Source: Cyanophora paradoxa CCMP329 (taxonomy: Eukaryota > Plantae > Glaucophyta). Taken from it: 64,000 nt of DNA. The notes beneath the pieces were generated by a model, which had not been told where the DNA came from, did not search any database, and saw only the letters and a list, made by a program, of their open reading frames with translations. A program made the position numbers and the translations under genes. How positions within the stretch are numbered: position 1 is the first letter of the stretch; every line of letters starts with the position of its first letter. This document shows, one piece after another, positions 26,129-28,262 of this stretch. The stretch spans positions 1 to 64,000 of the forward strand of contig QPMI01000148.1 in assembly GCA_004431415.1 (NCBI GenBank), read 5' to 3'.

Positions 26129-28262
26129 ATGGGCAGCGGCCGCGGGTGGACCCCGGCGAAGGGGATGCTGGATCTGGCGTGCGGCGGGCTGACGGAGTGG
26201 CCGGCGGCGGAGATCGCGAAGGCGGGGCCGGAGAACATTCTTATCCTCAACCTCTACGGGAACGAGCTCACGCGCATCCCGGGCGCCGAGCTCGCCAAGC
26301 TGAAGAATGTGGAGTGGCTGTCCGTGAACCGCAACCAGCTGACGGCGCTGCCGCCGGAGATCGGCTGCCTCCCCGCCCTGCAGCACCTGGACGTGTGCTT
26401 CAACCAGCTGACGGCGCTGCCACCGGAGATCGGCCGCATCGGCTCCCTGAAGTGGCTGGATGTGAAAGACAACAGGCTGGCGGCGCTGCCGCCGGAGATC
26501 GGCCGCCTTGCCGCCCTGCAGGAGTTGTACGTGCACAACAACCAGCTGACGGCGCTGCCGTCGGAGATCGGCCGCCTCGCCGCCCTGAAGAAGATGTATG
26601 TGTACAACAACCCGGTCTTGGACTTGTTGCCCGAGCCCGTCCGCCGCGCCATCAACGACAACAAGCATAACGGGGAAACCCAGTGTGCCTCCGTCTTGGC
26701 ACACCTCCGCTCCCTCCCCGCCCCCGCCGCAGCGGTGCGCCCCGCCGCCCCGCCACCCCGCGCCCCGCCCTTACCCCCCACCGCAGCCCGCACCCGCCGC
26801 CCCACCCGCGCCCCGCCTCCCGCTGCTCCAGCCGCCCCGGCCGCCGGTCCGCCCGCCCGCCCGCCCGCCCGCCCGCCCGCCCGCCCGCCCGCCCGCCCGC
26901 CCGCACGCTCGAGTTCCCGACGCGAGCCGGCCGCGCAGCAGGCCCACAGCCGGCCGCCCAGCAACCCCAGCAGGCGCCCGGGGCGGCGCCCCCGCGGCCC
27001 CTCCCGGCGGGCGACGTGCGTGCGTGGAGTGAGGACGAAGTCGTCGCGTGGGTCCGCTCCCGCGGCCAGATCGCCGAGTGCGCCGTGCCGTGCCGCGCCG
27101 CCCGCCCCGCACCGCACCGCCCCTGGCCTGAGGCAGCGGCAGGTTCGCGGGGGCCTTTCGCTACACGAACGGCGTCGCCCTCCTCGCCCTGGGCGACGAC
27201 GAGCTCGAGCGGATGGGCGTCGCGCACTTCGGCGCCCGCCACCGCCTCCTCGCCGAGATCGCCCTCCTCCGCGGCGGCCACGTGCAGGCAATCCCGCAGC
27301 ACCCGCGCCCACTGCAGCCGGCGGCCGACGGCAAGGCGTGGGACTGCTTTGTGAGGCGCGTGTCCCCACTCCCGCTGCCCTCTGCCCGGTCCCAGCGCTC
27401 ACGCTCCCGCGCAGCTACGCCCACGTCGACGCGGCGCTCGTCTTCCGCTACTGCGACGCCCTCGAGGCCGCCGGGCTATCGATCTGGTCCGCCGCACCCC
27501 GCCCGCCTTGCCCCCCCCCTCCGCGCGCCCCCACCCTCCGCTCACGCGCCCGCGCAGGGTCGACCGCGAGCTCAAGGCGGGCCAGAAGTGGATGGCCAAG
27601 ATTGGGGTGCGCTCGCCCGAGCAGGCCTTTAACCCTTACCCCCCTTAGCTTCTTCCCTCCCTCTTCCCTTGAACTGGCCCTGCCCCCGCCCCTGCACCCT
27701 CCCCCCGAACCAACCTTACGGGTTGGGGCGGCCACAGGAGGCGATGCAGCGCTGCCGGGCCTACGTCTGCTTCCTCTCGCCAGCATACATCGGCTCCAAG
27801 AACTGCGACGACGAGGTGCGCCGCAACCTGCCGCCCCGATCCAGGGCCAGGGCTCCGCGCCTGACCCTTAAGCAGATGCAGTTCGCCCACCACACGCTGC
27901 GCATCCCCAAGTTCCCTGGTGCCGCCGCGCCCGCCCCGCACCCTGCACCCCGCCTCACCCTCGGGCGCCAGTGTGGCTCGTCGACCCGAAGACCGTCAAG
28001 CTGCCGGTCGACTATGAGGCGCGCCCTCGCCCGCGCCTGCACCCTTCCTTCGCGCTCGCCCGGTCTGACTTGTGTTCACCATCAGATGATGCTGGCGTCG
28101 GTGAACTGGACGATGCAGCGCGGGGAGGGGGCGGCGGCGGCGGACGCGGCGGCCGGCGATCTGATCGCGGGCCTGCGCGACTTCCTGCGGCACGGGGGCT
28201 CCCGCCCCGGCCCCGGCCCCGGCCCCGCCCCCGCAGAGGAGAAGTCCTGCAGCGTGCAGTGA
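26129..28262 (+). CDS. LRR-SAM-TIR protein with C-terminal CaaX (multi-exon), paralog 2
   Basis: 6 LRRs; spliced SAM DVRAWSEDEVVAWVRSRGQIAEFAGAFRYTNGVALLALGDDELERMGVAHFGARHRLLAEIALLR; TIR WDCFVSYAHVD..SPAYIGSKNCDDE; ends EKSCSVQ*. Confidence 0.88.

Follow-up and report, generated by a model that had tools for sequence, protein, structure and literature searches.

TIR domains are nowadays regarded as ancient immune enzymes, and glaucophytes are a lineage sister to red algae and green plants; to our knowledge, almost nothing is known of glaucophyte TIRs. A TIR-encoding locus in a 64,000-nt stretch of the Cyanophora paradoxa CCMP329 genome (contig QPMI01000148.1, hereafter the window) raises the question of what kind of protein is built around this domain in a glaucophyte, and whether that protein could be an enzyme. 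A sequence-only reading of positions 27340-28262 had proposed a lipid-anchored TIR NADase, oligomerized by a SAM domain in one of two paralogs, as a cytoplasm-facing analogue of a Toll-like receptor (TLR). The explanation that we favor, with a rough probability of 0.5, is a family of soluble, cytoplasmic, receptor-like LRR-TIR and LRR-SAM-TIR proteins with a probable farnesyl tether and a putative Glu-dependent hydrolysis of NAD+ upon clustering. The N-terminal LRR solenoid, with its hypervariable concave face, would be the recognition module, joined by a Pro/Ala-rich linker to an output part in which the TIR would be the output module and the single SAM of paralog 2 could promote self-association. 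CSVQ, once farnesylated, would give a weak or transient hold on the cytoplasmic face of a membrane, and, should clustering driven by ligand or by SAM render the TIR catalytic, it would be expected to convert NAD+ to nicotinamide and linear ADPR as opposed to a cyclic isomer.

Gene structure of the tandem TIR paralogs

The interval 27340-28262 is the 3' portion, of seven exons (second half of SAM, complete TIR, and CSVQ with stop), of paralog 2, which spans 26129-28262. Its exon pieces were taken from the + strand and each was translated alone, counting full codons only:

26129..26760, + strand: start codon and LRR domain with 23-residue repeats, frame 2 (Pfam LRR_8, E = 5.5e-33 on 26129-26800)
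26761..26994, + strand: Pro/Ala-rich linker with a (CCCG)18 microsatellite at 26836-26908 (three-frame translations, TRF)
26995..27089, + strand: SAM domain, first half (...VRAWSEDEVVAWVRSRGQIAE...), donor at ~27085-27090 (tblastn to P0007 SAM residues 216-245, 77% identity; weak SAM_Ste50p match)
27144..27355, + strand: second half of SAM, linker and start of TIR strand beta-A (...GKAWDCFV and a split Ser codon), GC donor (SAM_1, 26.3 bits; exon table)
27415..27486, + strand: TIR exon b (YAHVD...GLSI, alpha-A), 21/23 residues identical to P0003
27558..27606, + strand: TIR exon c (VDRELKAGQKWMAKIG), BB loop with the conserved Gly, 16/16 residues identical to P0003, P0004, P0012, and P0015
27738..27815, + strand: TIR exon d (EAMQRCRAYVCFLSPAYIGSKNCDDE), covering beta-C and the SKNCDDE-bearing helix alpha-C (matched to positions 46-71 of the TIR_2 profile, E = 0.0046)
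27876..27918, + strand: TIR exon e (MQFAHHTLRIPKFP), exact substring of P0002
27972..28018, + strand: TIR exon f (WLVDPKTVKLPVDYE), GC donor, exact substring of P0002
28086..28262, + strand: last exon, TIR alpha-D to alpha-E, disordered Pro/Gly tail and ...EEKSCSVQ (exon table), with CSVQ at 28248-28259 and the stop codon at 28260-28262

From 27144 to 28262 there are six introns, each of 53-131 nt with GT-AG or GC-AG borders, and phase is kept throughout, with Ser, Trp, and Val codons split across exons. The six TIR exons downstream of the SAM-bearing exon are 71-100% identical (ungapped) to P0003, a paralog on another contig that itself carries the WDCFVSYAHVD junction and ends in EKSCSVQ. 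Upstream, the LRR region shows a 69-nt tandem periodicity at 26323-26612 (TRF), and within the linker the frame shifts from 2 to 1, via either an unplaced intron or an assembly indel. The linker offers many candidate GC/GT-AG introns, too many of them of a suitable length to single one out as the LRR-SAM intron. No frame-1 ATG was found upstream of the SAM domain, and the SAM-TIR part of paralog 2 would therefore be unable to start independently. No model of paralog 2 turned up among public proteins of 93-795 residues in word searches that used P0003 (region 285-454, and P0003:286-454 alone).

Paralog 1, at 22796-24505, is a tandem paralog with the same TIR and CSVQ:

22796..23595, + strand: exon 1, with start codon, LRR, Pro-rich linker, and ...RDCFA with a split Ser codon, lacking SAM (open 266-codon frame; LRR_4, E = 1.8e-22)
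23648-23719, 23799-23847, 23979-24056, 24117-24159, 24213-24259, and 24326-24505, + strand: TIR exons b-g, all six exact substrings of P0002, with CSVQ at 24491-24502 and the stop codon at 24503-24505

Six of its seven exons are matched exactly by public model g2261 (P0002 = tig00000600_g2261.t1, contig tig00000600), in which exons b-g, including the CSVQ exon, are consecutive. The spliced TIR with WDCFVSYAHVD and the CSVQ ending of both paralogs, as originally described, were thus borne out by in-phase exons and by P0002 and P0003, which also agree on the C-terminus encoded by the last exon. The presence of SAM in paralog 2 and its absence from paralog 1 were likewise confirmed, by the Pfam match and by a ~360-nt indel between the two in alignment A1; the SAM cassette occupies 26974-27287.

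The 15-mer for CSVQ plus stop occurs exactly twice in the 64-kb window (24491 and 28248), compared to 0.07 copies expected by chance, and each copy closes one of the paralogs. Between exon d and the stop codon the paralogs are 92-100% identical, in introns as much as in exons, and identity drops from 96.6% to 65% immediately past the stop. The shared CSVQ of the window paralogs is not independent evidence, as its identity reflects recent gene conversion. In the 5' part of the TIR, exons are 86-94% identical compared to 68-87% for introns, and we count this excess of exon conservation as selection.

The putative LRR sensor and its gene family

Both genes open with an LRR domain that the sequence-only reading had missed. 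The real basis of the analogy to TLRs that it drew is this upstream LRR. The LRR scaffold is near-invariant whereas concave-face positions are hypervariable: repeat positions 19, 21, 23, and 1 have entropies of 2.8-3.4 bits, compared to 0-1 bit for the scaffold. A Pro/Ala-rich linker connects LRR and TIR. Neither a transmembrane segment nor a signal peptide was found in the window pieces, P0002, or P0003 (19-residue Kyte-Doolittle maximum, 0.9-1.1), and the protein would therefore sit on the cytoplasmic side, in agreement with the placement originally proposed.

The two paralogs are the first two members of a tandem array of four genes (LRR-TIR, LRR-SAM-TIR, LRR-RING, and LRR-half-SAM), which have output domains swapped behind the LRR. 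Its remaining members are:

31211..32580, + strand: LRR-RING (LRR_4, E = 6e-16 on 31211-32350; zf-C3HC4_3, E = 9.7e-9 on 32401-32580)
34998..35655, + strand: LRR (public model g2265 = P0008; tblastn, 98.9% identity) and only the first half of a SAM, with P0007 SAM residues 217-239 matched at 35587-35655 (tblastn)

The array adjoins an integrated low-GC element with a protein-primed DNA polymerase.

Elsewhere, LRR-SAM-TIR is also annotated as a gene (P0135), and family partners are numerous and of diverse architectures. From the sequences compared, the family appears to have expanded in C. paradoxa and has so far been seen only there; its nearest relatives beyond Cyanophora are prokaryotic multi-TIR proteins. 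We found no literature on Cyanophora or glaucophyte TIR families, the supplement of a eukaryotic TIR survey has no Cyanophora entry, and the combination of LRR, TIR or SAM-TIR, and CSVQ tail has not been described before. The locus reveals a lineage-specific family in which a variable cytosolic LRR is coupled to TIR, SAM-TIR, or RING without the NB-ARC/NACHT switch of the NLRs of plants and animals, and the LRR-TIR proteins presumably have an immune role.

Putative TIR active site, SAM domain, and C-terminal tail

Profile scans of paralog 2 were run exon by exon, exons c, e, and f (<20 residues) not being scannable singly; P0002 (paralog 1) and P0003, the closest intact paralog, stood in for its spliced whole. 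Within the TIR superfamily (PF13676 and PF01582), TIR_2 (PF13676) matched P0002 with 61.5 bits and P0003 with 70.9 bits (cut-off, 28), and the 26-residue Glu exon of paralog 2 alone scored 17.9 bits. An AlphaFold2 model of P0003:286-454 had a mean pLDDT of 90.4 and a pTM of 0.82, and a Foldseek search of the PDB with it gave at least 162 matches at E ≤ 0.001, all of them TIR among the matches listed. The TIR domain is real, as had been claimed, with a five-strand, flavodoxin-like beta-alpha fold as modeled on P0003 and indicated by Pfam. Since TLR15, RUN1, SNC1, TLR1, SARM1, IL-18R-beta, MAL, and AbTir all rank within one order of magnitude, fold similarity is uninformative as to enzyme or scaffold.

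The putative catalytic Glu codons are 27813-27815 in paralog 2 and 24054-24056 in paralog 1. This residue, within SKNCDDE, lines up with the Glu in helix alpha-C of TLR15/TLR2, BtTir, and Cat1, and all but one of the 120 related TIR domains in alignment A3 have E in its column (119/120); the NADase glutamate is indeed kept, but that is not proof of an enzyme. The further claim that FxSY together with SxxCxxE marks active TIRs did not hold, because TLR15, TLR2, TLR6, and TLR1 have both and TLR2 is inactive. These four were also the best sequence matches in the structure set (E = 2.5e-5 to 7e-3), along with MyD88, while the best PADLOC matches were SAVED-TIR (1.7e-10 over residues 7-143), Ago-associated TIR, and ThsB. 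The glutamate persists in the majority of eukaryotic TIRs, and many TIRs, a green-algal one among them, are active, whereas TLR2, IL-1R9, and IL-1R10 keep it and show no activity (10.64898/2026.04.20.719644). A recent preprint describes TLR4, too, as catalytic, along with many TIRs of protists.

The Trp position of WxxxE is Asn here (codon 27801-27803 in paralog 2). Among the 120 relatives in A3 this column holds N in 48, Y in 43, H in 7, F in 6, and W in 5, and prokaryotic defence TIR NADases likewise have helix alpha-C in the S-x-(N/Y)-C-x-D-E form. In AbTir and SARM1 the Trp stacks on the substrate; the position is aromatic, usually Trp, in all TIRs known to make cyclic ADPR; and putting Ala in place of this Trp reduces or abolishes the activity of AbTir, SARM1, L6, and ROQ1 (10.1101/2022.05.07.491051). 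The Asn thus argues against a cyclase and would still be compatible with a hydrolase, so that, if the TIR is active, linear ADPR and NAD+ loss are the likelier outcome. The BB-loop Gly (KAGQKW) is near-invariant in A3, and AbTir G174A has little or no activity (10.1101/2022.05.07.491051). Near-absolute conservation of both Glu and Gly would be most easily explained by catalysis, and we infer NADase activity and its product from sequence.

For the SAM domain, SAM_1 (PF00536) scored 26.3 bits on 27144-27353 with the second half alone (cut-off, 23), compared to 32.3 bits for that of P0007. Among solved structures, its closest matches include the SAM domains of polymerizing ETV6, DGK-delta, and tankyrase, together with those of CNK2, liprin-beta-1, and others. 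The SAM domain could drive oligomerization of paralog 2.

Both paralogs end in a CaaX box, with Cys at -4, an aliphatic a2, X = Q (one of the accepted S/M/Q/A/C), and the stop codon directly after. CSVQ is identical to the motif of human Rab28L, termed a high-affinity farnesylation motif (PMC3188499), and the view that a CaaX box with X = Q is a farnesylation signal was upheld on this basis. Such a Q directs farnesyltransferase and not GGTase-I, and the CxxQ boxes CASQ (Ydj1) and CAHQ (DNAJA2) are farnesylated. In paralog 2, CSVQ is preceded by ~22-25 disordered residues encoded by (GCCCCG)5 (TRF, 28204-28233), a period-6 repeat that is unable to shift the frame; the tail of the P0003 model has a pLDDT of 53-73. 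P0003 retains EKSCSVQ although its tail ahead of the motif differs by substitutions and indels. CSVQ is confined to a single young subclade, in 3/~20 C. paradoxa relatives (P0002, P0003, and paralog 2 of the window), three sister models terminate before it, and no literature was found linking TIR-domain proteins to CaaX prenylation. Farnesylation of the tail is most likely, judging from the motif. The proposed lipid anchor survives as a bona fide farnesyltransferase motif, but one that would be weak alone: the EEK context is acidic, no palmitoylatable Cys or polybasic patch was seen in the sequence near the box, and a farnesyl without a second membrane signal is a weak anchor. Enzyme activity and lipid anchoring are both predicted.

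Competing explanations and known systems

In place of an enzyme, the TIR could be a non-enzymatic assembly module of the TLR/MyD88 type that, after LRR engagement, nucleates higher-order TIR-TIR and SAM-SAM complexes with further members of the large C. paradoxa TIR family without cleaving NAD+. Such a role would fit the best structure matches (TLR15/TLR2, TLR6, TLR1, and MyD88), the Asn for the WxxxE Trp, as in a non-aromatic, SKECDFQ-type adaptor helix, the many recruitable family partners of diverse architectures, and the inactivity of TLR2, IL-1R9, and IL-1R10 despite their glutamate (10.64898/2026.04.20.719644). It accords poorly with the Glu in 119/120 relatives and the near-invariant BB-loop Gly, with closest prokaryotic profiles that are NADase defence TIRs, and with the catalysis described for TLR4 and many protist TIRs in the recent preprint; we consider it unlikely, if a serious contender. 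A separate doubt concerns the tail, which might go unused in lipidation and be the fortuitous, recent C-terminus of one young subclade, spread by gene conversion among plainly soluble proteins. CSVQ in only 3/~20 C. paradoxa relatives, the position of the window copies inside a 92-100% identical tract that extends to introns, and the acidic EEK context lacking a second membrane signal are what such a history would produce. Yet CSVQ corresponds exactly to a farnesylation motif with experimental grounding (PMC3188499), it follows a ~25-residue disordered linker as in the hypervariable regions of Ras/Rab, and EKSCSVQ is invariant in P0003 though the tail upstream diverged. The upstream hexanucleotide repeat, moreover, cannot shift the frame, and paralog identity falls from 96.6% to 65% just past the stop, and we hold an unused, fortuitous tail to be rather improbable.

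It is also conceivable that paralog 2 is a decaying or mis-assembled copy, in which the frame change between LRR and SAM is real and no LRR-SAM-TIR protein is made. The LRR in frame 2 and SAM in frame 1 with (CCCG)18 between them would agree with this, as would a paralog 2 TIR without a public model and a fourth array gene with only half a SAM. However, the exons further downstream all stay open and keep phase, their splice sites are intact, the linker holds several candidate GC/GT-AG introns of suitable length, a 4-nt repeat is easily miscounted by long-read assembly, and the same architecture is annotated elsewhere (P0135), so that decay seems very doubtful. Going beyond the favored receptor-like reading, C. 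paradoxa might possess an independent, cytoplasmic, TLR-like system, with diversifying LRRs, swappable outputs (TIR, SAM-TIR, RING, or SAM), and an NAD+-hydrolyzing TIR concentrated on a membrane by a farnesylated tail in some members, or by an N-terminal acyl signal in paralogs elsewhere, and switched on by ligand- and SAM-driven clustering, the neighboring polymerase-bearing element perhaps being of the invader type guarded against; this extension is speculative and quite improbable as a whole.

Among known systems, SARM1 resembles these proteins in having SAM upstream of TIR (a feature of paralog 2), the alpha-C Glu, and an ..AG.. BB loop; Foldseek superposes the TIR folds (prob 1.0, TMt ~0.7) and activation by oligomerization is the expected logic. 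Sequence similarity is weak (phmmer E ~0.25), and SARM1 differs in having two SAM domains compared to one (paralog 2) or none (paralog 1), an ARM autoinhibitory/sensor domain, which has no match here, in place of LRR, W638 where Cyanophora has Asn, and an N-terminal mitochondrial targeting segment as opposed to a C-terminal CaaX box. TLR15/1/2/6 have an LRR sensor and TIR output in common with the Cyanophora proteins, as well as FxSY, SxxCxxE, and the FAHH stretch. Unlike TLRs, the Cyanophora proteins lack a signal peptide and transmembrane helix, have a cytosolic LRR of short, 23-residue repeats, would reach the membrane through a putative lipid and not a helix, and carry Asn for the Trp of WCxYE; they would be TLR-like by analogy only. 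Plant TIR-NLRs and TIR-only proteins (RUN1, SNC1, RPP1) are likewise intracellular, with TIR and LRR, tandem clusters, and variable LRR surfaces, and in structure they occupy Foldseek ranks 3-12 among the matches listed. The glaucophyte proteins differ from them in having no NB-ARC, in the order LRR to TIR in contrast to TIR-NB-LRR, and in lacking the Trp of the SSWCLDE-type motif. Prokaryotic TIR-SAVED, SPARTA (short-Ago TIR-APAZ), and ThsB share a TIR_2-type domain and the best PADLOC matches, but the Cyanophora gene is eukaryotic and intron-rich, with an LRR/SAM fusion and a CaaX tail but no evident SAVED, Ago, or ThsA partner. The Asn for Trp in WxxxE, which many prokaryotic relatives also have, offers a natural test of the aromatic rule for ADPR cyclization.

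The adaptor TRAM/TICAM2 already shows that a lipid can hold a TIR protein at membranes, through a myristoylation site and a polybasic region (PMC3369926); its signal is an N-terminal myristate with polybasic residues and it has no LRR, whereas Cyanophora would rely on a C-terminal farnesyl box as a single signal. Rab28L has the identical CSVQ in an unrelated protein family, with only the tail signal in common, as is also the case for Ydj1 and DNAJA2. If the CaaX box is used, these would be the first TIR proteins known to us to be positioned by C-terminal farnesylation, and a natural test of whether a transmembrane receptor or an oligomerizing NTPase can be dispensed with once TIR domains are concentrated in two dimensions at a membrane.

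N-myristoylation of the conserved MG(K/R)GW start was considered and rejected, as the Lys/Arg after Gly and the Ile/Pro beyond clash with the usual N-myristoyltransferase pattern (PROSITE PS00008, a weak pattern); the MGSGRGW of paralog 2 is the sole MG start that fits it. Elsewhere in the family, paralogs P0126 and P0139 start with MGC... and P0134 with MGSGPS, and these N-acylation-like starts hint that membrane tethering may matter to the family.

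Exon structure of the two paralogs

The exons of paralog 2, the LRR-SAM-TIR gene at 26129-28262 (+), were translated one by one using full codons only, with the following results.

Exons of paralog 2 from the SAM domain to the stop codon (separate exon translations)
27144-27355, +, second half of the SAM domain and ...GKAWDCFV
27415-27486, +, TIR exon, YAHVD...
27558-27606, +, TIR exon, VDRELKAGQKWMAKIG
27738-27815, +, TIR exon holding the conserved Glu ("Glu exon"), EAMQRCRAYVCFLSPAYIGSKNCDDE
27876-27918, +, TIR exon, MQFAHHTLRIPKFP
27972-28018, +, TIR exon, WLVDPKTVKLPVDYE
28086-28262, +, last exon, ending ...EEKSCSVQ, then stop

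The introns are 53-131 nt long with GT-AG or GC-AG ends and consistent phases, and paralog 1 (the LRR-TIR gene, 22796-24505, +) has six introns at the same positions. In the 5' TIR region, exons of the two paralogs are 86-94% identical and introns 68-87%; exons being more alike than introns matches the expectation for real exons. The six TIR exons of paralog 1, the CSVQ exon among them, translate into exact consecutive substrings of its public model, P0002 (tig00000600_g2261.t1); the WDCFVSYAHVD junction recurs in P0003, an intact C. paradoxa paralog encoded on another contig; and the 15-mer encoding CSVQ plus stop occurs exactly twice in the window, once per gene end. The sequence-only reading, which described a spliced TIR domain with this junction and CSVQ before the stop in both paralogs, was therefore correct, and the last exon as modelled carries CSVQ. 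Exons of P0002 are 100% identical to the window-encoded sequence and those of P0008 (g2265, the fourth array member) 98.9%. These matches place the window on contig tig00000600 of the glaucophyte alga C. paradoxa; proteins with this style of identifier, also found in EukProt with the 266-codon first exon of paralog 1, belong to that species (EP00741; PMC12449267).

GC-AG introns are frequent: AG/GCGCG donors begin 2 of 6 introns in paralog 2 (27356, 28019) and 3 of 6 in paralog 1 (23596, 24057, 24260), and the two genes differ in the donor of the intron that follows the Glu exon, GT in paralog 2 (27816) and GC in paralog 1 (24057). The 5' side of P0002 is probably faulty at 22447-22611, where an extra exon precedes the family-typical MGRGW start. 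The model also splices out part of an open Pro-rich linker (23380-23650), probably losing the first TIR strand, and reads ...ARPVHYVHVD in place of ...RDCFASYVHVD.

The LRR of paralog 2 is read in frame 2 and its SAM domain in frame 1. A (CCCG)18 microsatellite separates the two, and the frame of the SAM domain contains no ATG upstream of that domain; this points to an unplaced intron, a miscounted repeat or a frameshifted gene. The LRR, SAM, TIR architecture also occurs elsewhere, in the annotated gene P0135. The SAM cassette (26974-27287) is bordered by CAG/GCGCCC and GTGCAG/, and dropping its 314 nt joins codon boundaries in frame (...PAAQQPQQ to AIPQHPRPLQPAADGKAWDCFV), a join nearly identical to the SAM-less linker found in the proteins P0003, P0004, P0012 and P0015. 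Alternative splicing of paralog 2 into SAM-plus and SAM-minus isoforms is possible.

Domain content, array and relatives

Paralog 2 exons of at least 20 residues (all but three) were scanned individually, and P0002 (paralog 1) and P0003 stood in for paralog 2 in whole-domain analyses; P0003 is 71-100% identical, in ungapped comparison, to the six TIR exons that follow the SAM-containing exon. Pfam TIR_2 scored 61.5 bits in P0002 and 70.9 bits in P0003 (cut-off 28), the 26-residue Glu exon by itself matched TIR_2 (E = 0.004), and 27144-27353 scored above the SAM_1 cut-off. P0003 residues 286-454, modelled with AlphaFold2 from a 120-sequence alignment, reached a mean pLDDT of 90.4, and every match listed in a Foldseek search of the PDB with this model contained a TIR domain. 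Both paralogs begin with an LRR domain (LRR_8 E = 5.5e-33 in paralog 2), which the sequence-only reading had missed. Since no 19-residue stretch comes near transmembrane-level hydrophobicity, the LRR-(SAM)-TIR proteins would be soluble.

Four members lie in tandem on the + strand of the window: the LRR-TIR and LRR-SAM-TIR genes and the following two, the last of which may be a decaying copy.

Further array members sharing the same LRR module
31211-32580, +, LRR-RING, putative E3 ligase (zf-C3HC4_3 E = 9.7e-9)
34998-35655, +, LRR and a SAM domain limited to its first half

Across 73 family repeats of the 23-residue LRR, the scaffold is nearly invariant (0-1 bit) and the x positions on the beta-strand face (19, 21, 23 and 1) have 2.8-3.4 bits of entropy, which is the pattern of diversifying recognition surfaces. 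A TIR profile search of 1.84 billion representatives returned 30,555 TIR matches. The full-length relatives with at least 139 bits per domain were all from C. paradoxa among those whose source was checked (P0136 left out), and the next TIR relatives had at most 70 bits per domain, those named to organism being prokaryotic multi-TIR proteins (Parabeggiatoa, a Sigynarchaeota archaeon, Geodermatophilus). In C. paradoxa this TIR type is partnered with LRR, LRR-SAM, SAM, RING-SAM-...-IBR, beta-helix and myosin-LRR. The best description of the locus is a pair of genes from a tandem array that is specific to C. paradoxa and encodes cytosolic LRR-output proteins; LRR-TIR proteins, SAM-TIR proteins and lipidated TIR adaptors are kinds already known, on which it varies. 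Multiple IQ motifs, which bind calmodulin, lie in a long open frame at 37905-41222 (+) (PF00612 E = 1.2e-37), and P0131, a relative of the TIR family in C. paradoxa, is modelled as myosin-LRR-TIR.

Directly upstream of the array is a low-GC block (1-20200, 42-48% GC), followed from ~20.2 kb by the stretch of 65-78% GC that holds the array. The block has the appearance of an integrated element, Maverick/Polinton-like or similar. At its junction with the GC-rich, host-like sequence (20500-21420) are long G-rich low-complexity tracts, with poly-G up to 43 nt and GGGAGG repeats.

Matches in the low-GC block
13932-15392, protein-primed family-B DNA polymerase ORF (PF03175 E = 1.2e-12)
16391-17926, retroviral-type integrase core, weak (E = 0.008, below cut-off)
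13306-17, endonuclease VII, weak match

Catalytic potential of the TIR domain

The paralogs' TIR Glu lines up with the alpha-C Glu of BtTir, Cat1 and TLR15/2/6/1, and 119 of 120 relatives have E in this column; the paralogs also retain the BB-loop Gly, and the top defence-system profiles are NADase TIRs (SAVED-TIR, 1.7e-10; Ago-associated TIR; ThsB). The Glu is kept in most eukaryotic TIRs, many of them catalytic, including TLR4 and a Chlamydomonas TIR (10.64898/2026.04.20.719644); Cyanophora proteins are absent from those data. However, the earlier rule that FxSY and the SxxCxxE Glu mark active TIRs is not diagnostic, because TLRs share both features with the paralogs and because TLR2, IL-1R9 and IL-1R10 keep the Glu with undetectable activity (10.64898/2026.04.20.719644).

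Against the Glu evidence, the Trp position of WxxxE, which is Trp in AbTir and SARM1, is Asn in the paralogs (N or Y in most of the clade), and this points away from catalysis. The substrate analogue is stacked against this Trp in AbTir and SARM1, mutants of the residue have reduced or no activity, and every TIR known to make cyclic ADPR has an aromatic residue there (10.1101/2022.05.07.491051). Catalysis is nevertheless plausible: both paralogs are predicted to be probably catalytic and probably not cyclases, in which case the product should be linear ADPR plus nicotinamide, with no cADPR isomer.

The CSVQ tail and possible membrane placement

The proposal that a CaaX box with X = Q signals farnesylation has precedent. 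CSVQ is the exact C-terminus of the human Rab28 long isoform, where it was termed a high-affinity farnesylation motif (PMC3188499), and yeast and human farnesyltransferase, but not GGTase-I, modify CxxQ boxes such as CASQ and CAHQ (PMC11152559). The ~25 residues ahead of CSVQ are disordered (pLDDT 53-73 in the P0003 model) and partly encoded by a hexanucleotide repeat, a unit that makes a frame shift impossible. P0003 retains EKSCSVQ although its preceding tail differs by substitutions and indels, and identity between the window paralogs falls from 96.6% to 65% directly after the stop codon.

The two copies in the window should not be over-read, and the box occurs in no more than three family members. 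From the start of the Glu exon through the stop codon (27738-28262 versus 23979-24505), exons and introns alike are 92-100% identical, compared with 79% for the LRR exons and 65% for the 3' flank. This is a gene-conversion-like tract, and both CSVQ copies lie inside it.

The tail is best treated as a credible candidate farnesylation signal. The residues beside it are acidic and offer neither a cysteine nor a polybasic patch as second signal, so a farnesyl group by itself would bind weakly or transiently. The lipid-anchored TIR NADase proposed earlier is partly supported: the Glu, BB-loop Gly and CSVQ speak for it, the Asn in WxxxE and this acidic tail against it, and the motif rule behind it is not diagnostic. 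TRAM, which is N-myristoylated, is a precedent for a lipid-tethered TIR protein, and three C. paradoxa paralogs have lipid-signal-like starts (MGC... in P0126 and P0139, MGSGPS in P0134), which fits membrane placement mattering in the family. The literature searched yielded nothing on a TIR protein with a CaaX box; the metagenomic TIR protein P0179 ends in KSKSCVVM. Several metagenomic LRR proteins (P0092, P0097 and P0117) also end in CaaX boxes (CVLM, CVIS and CRIQ).
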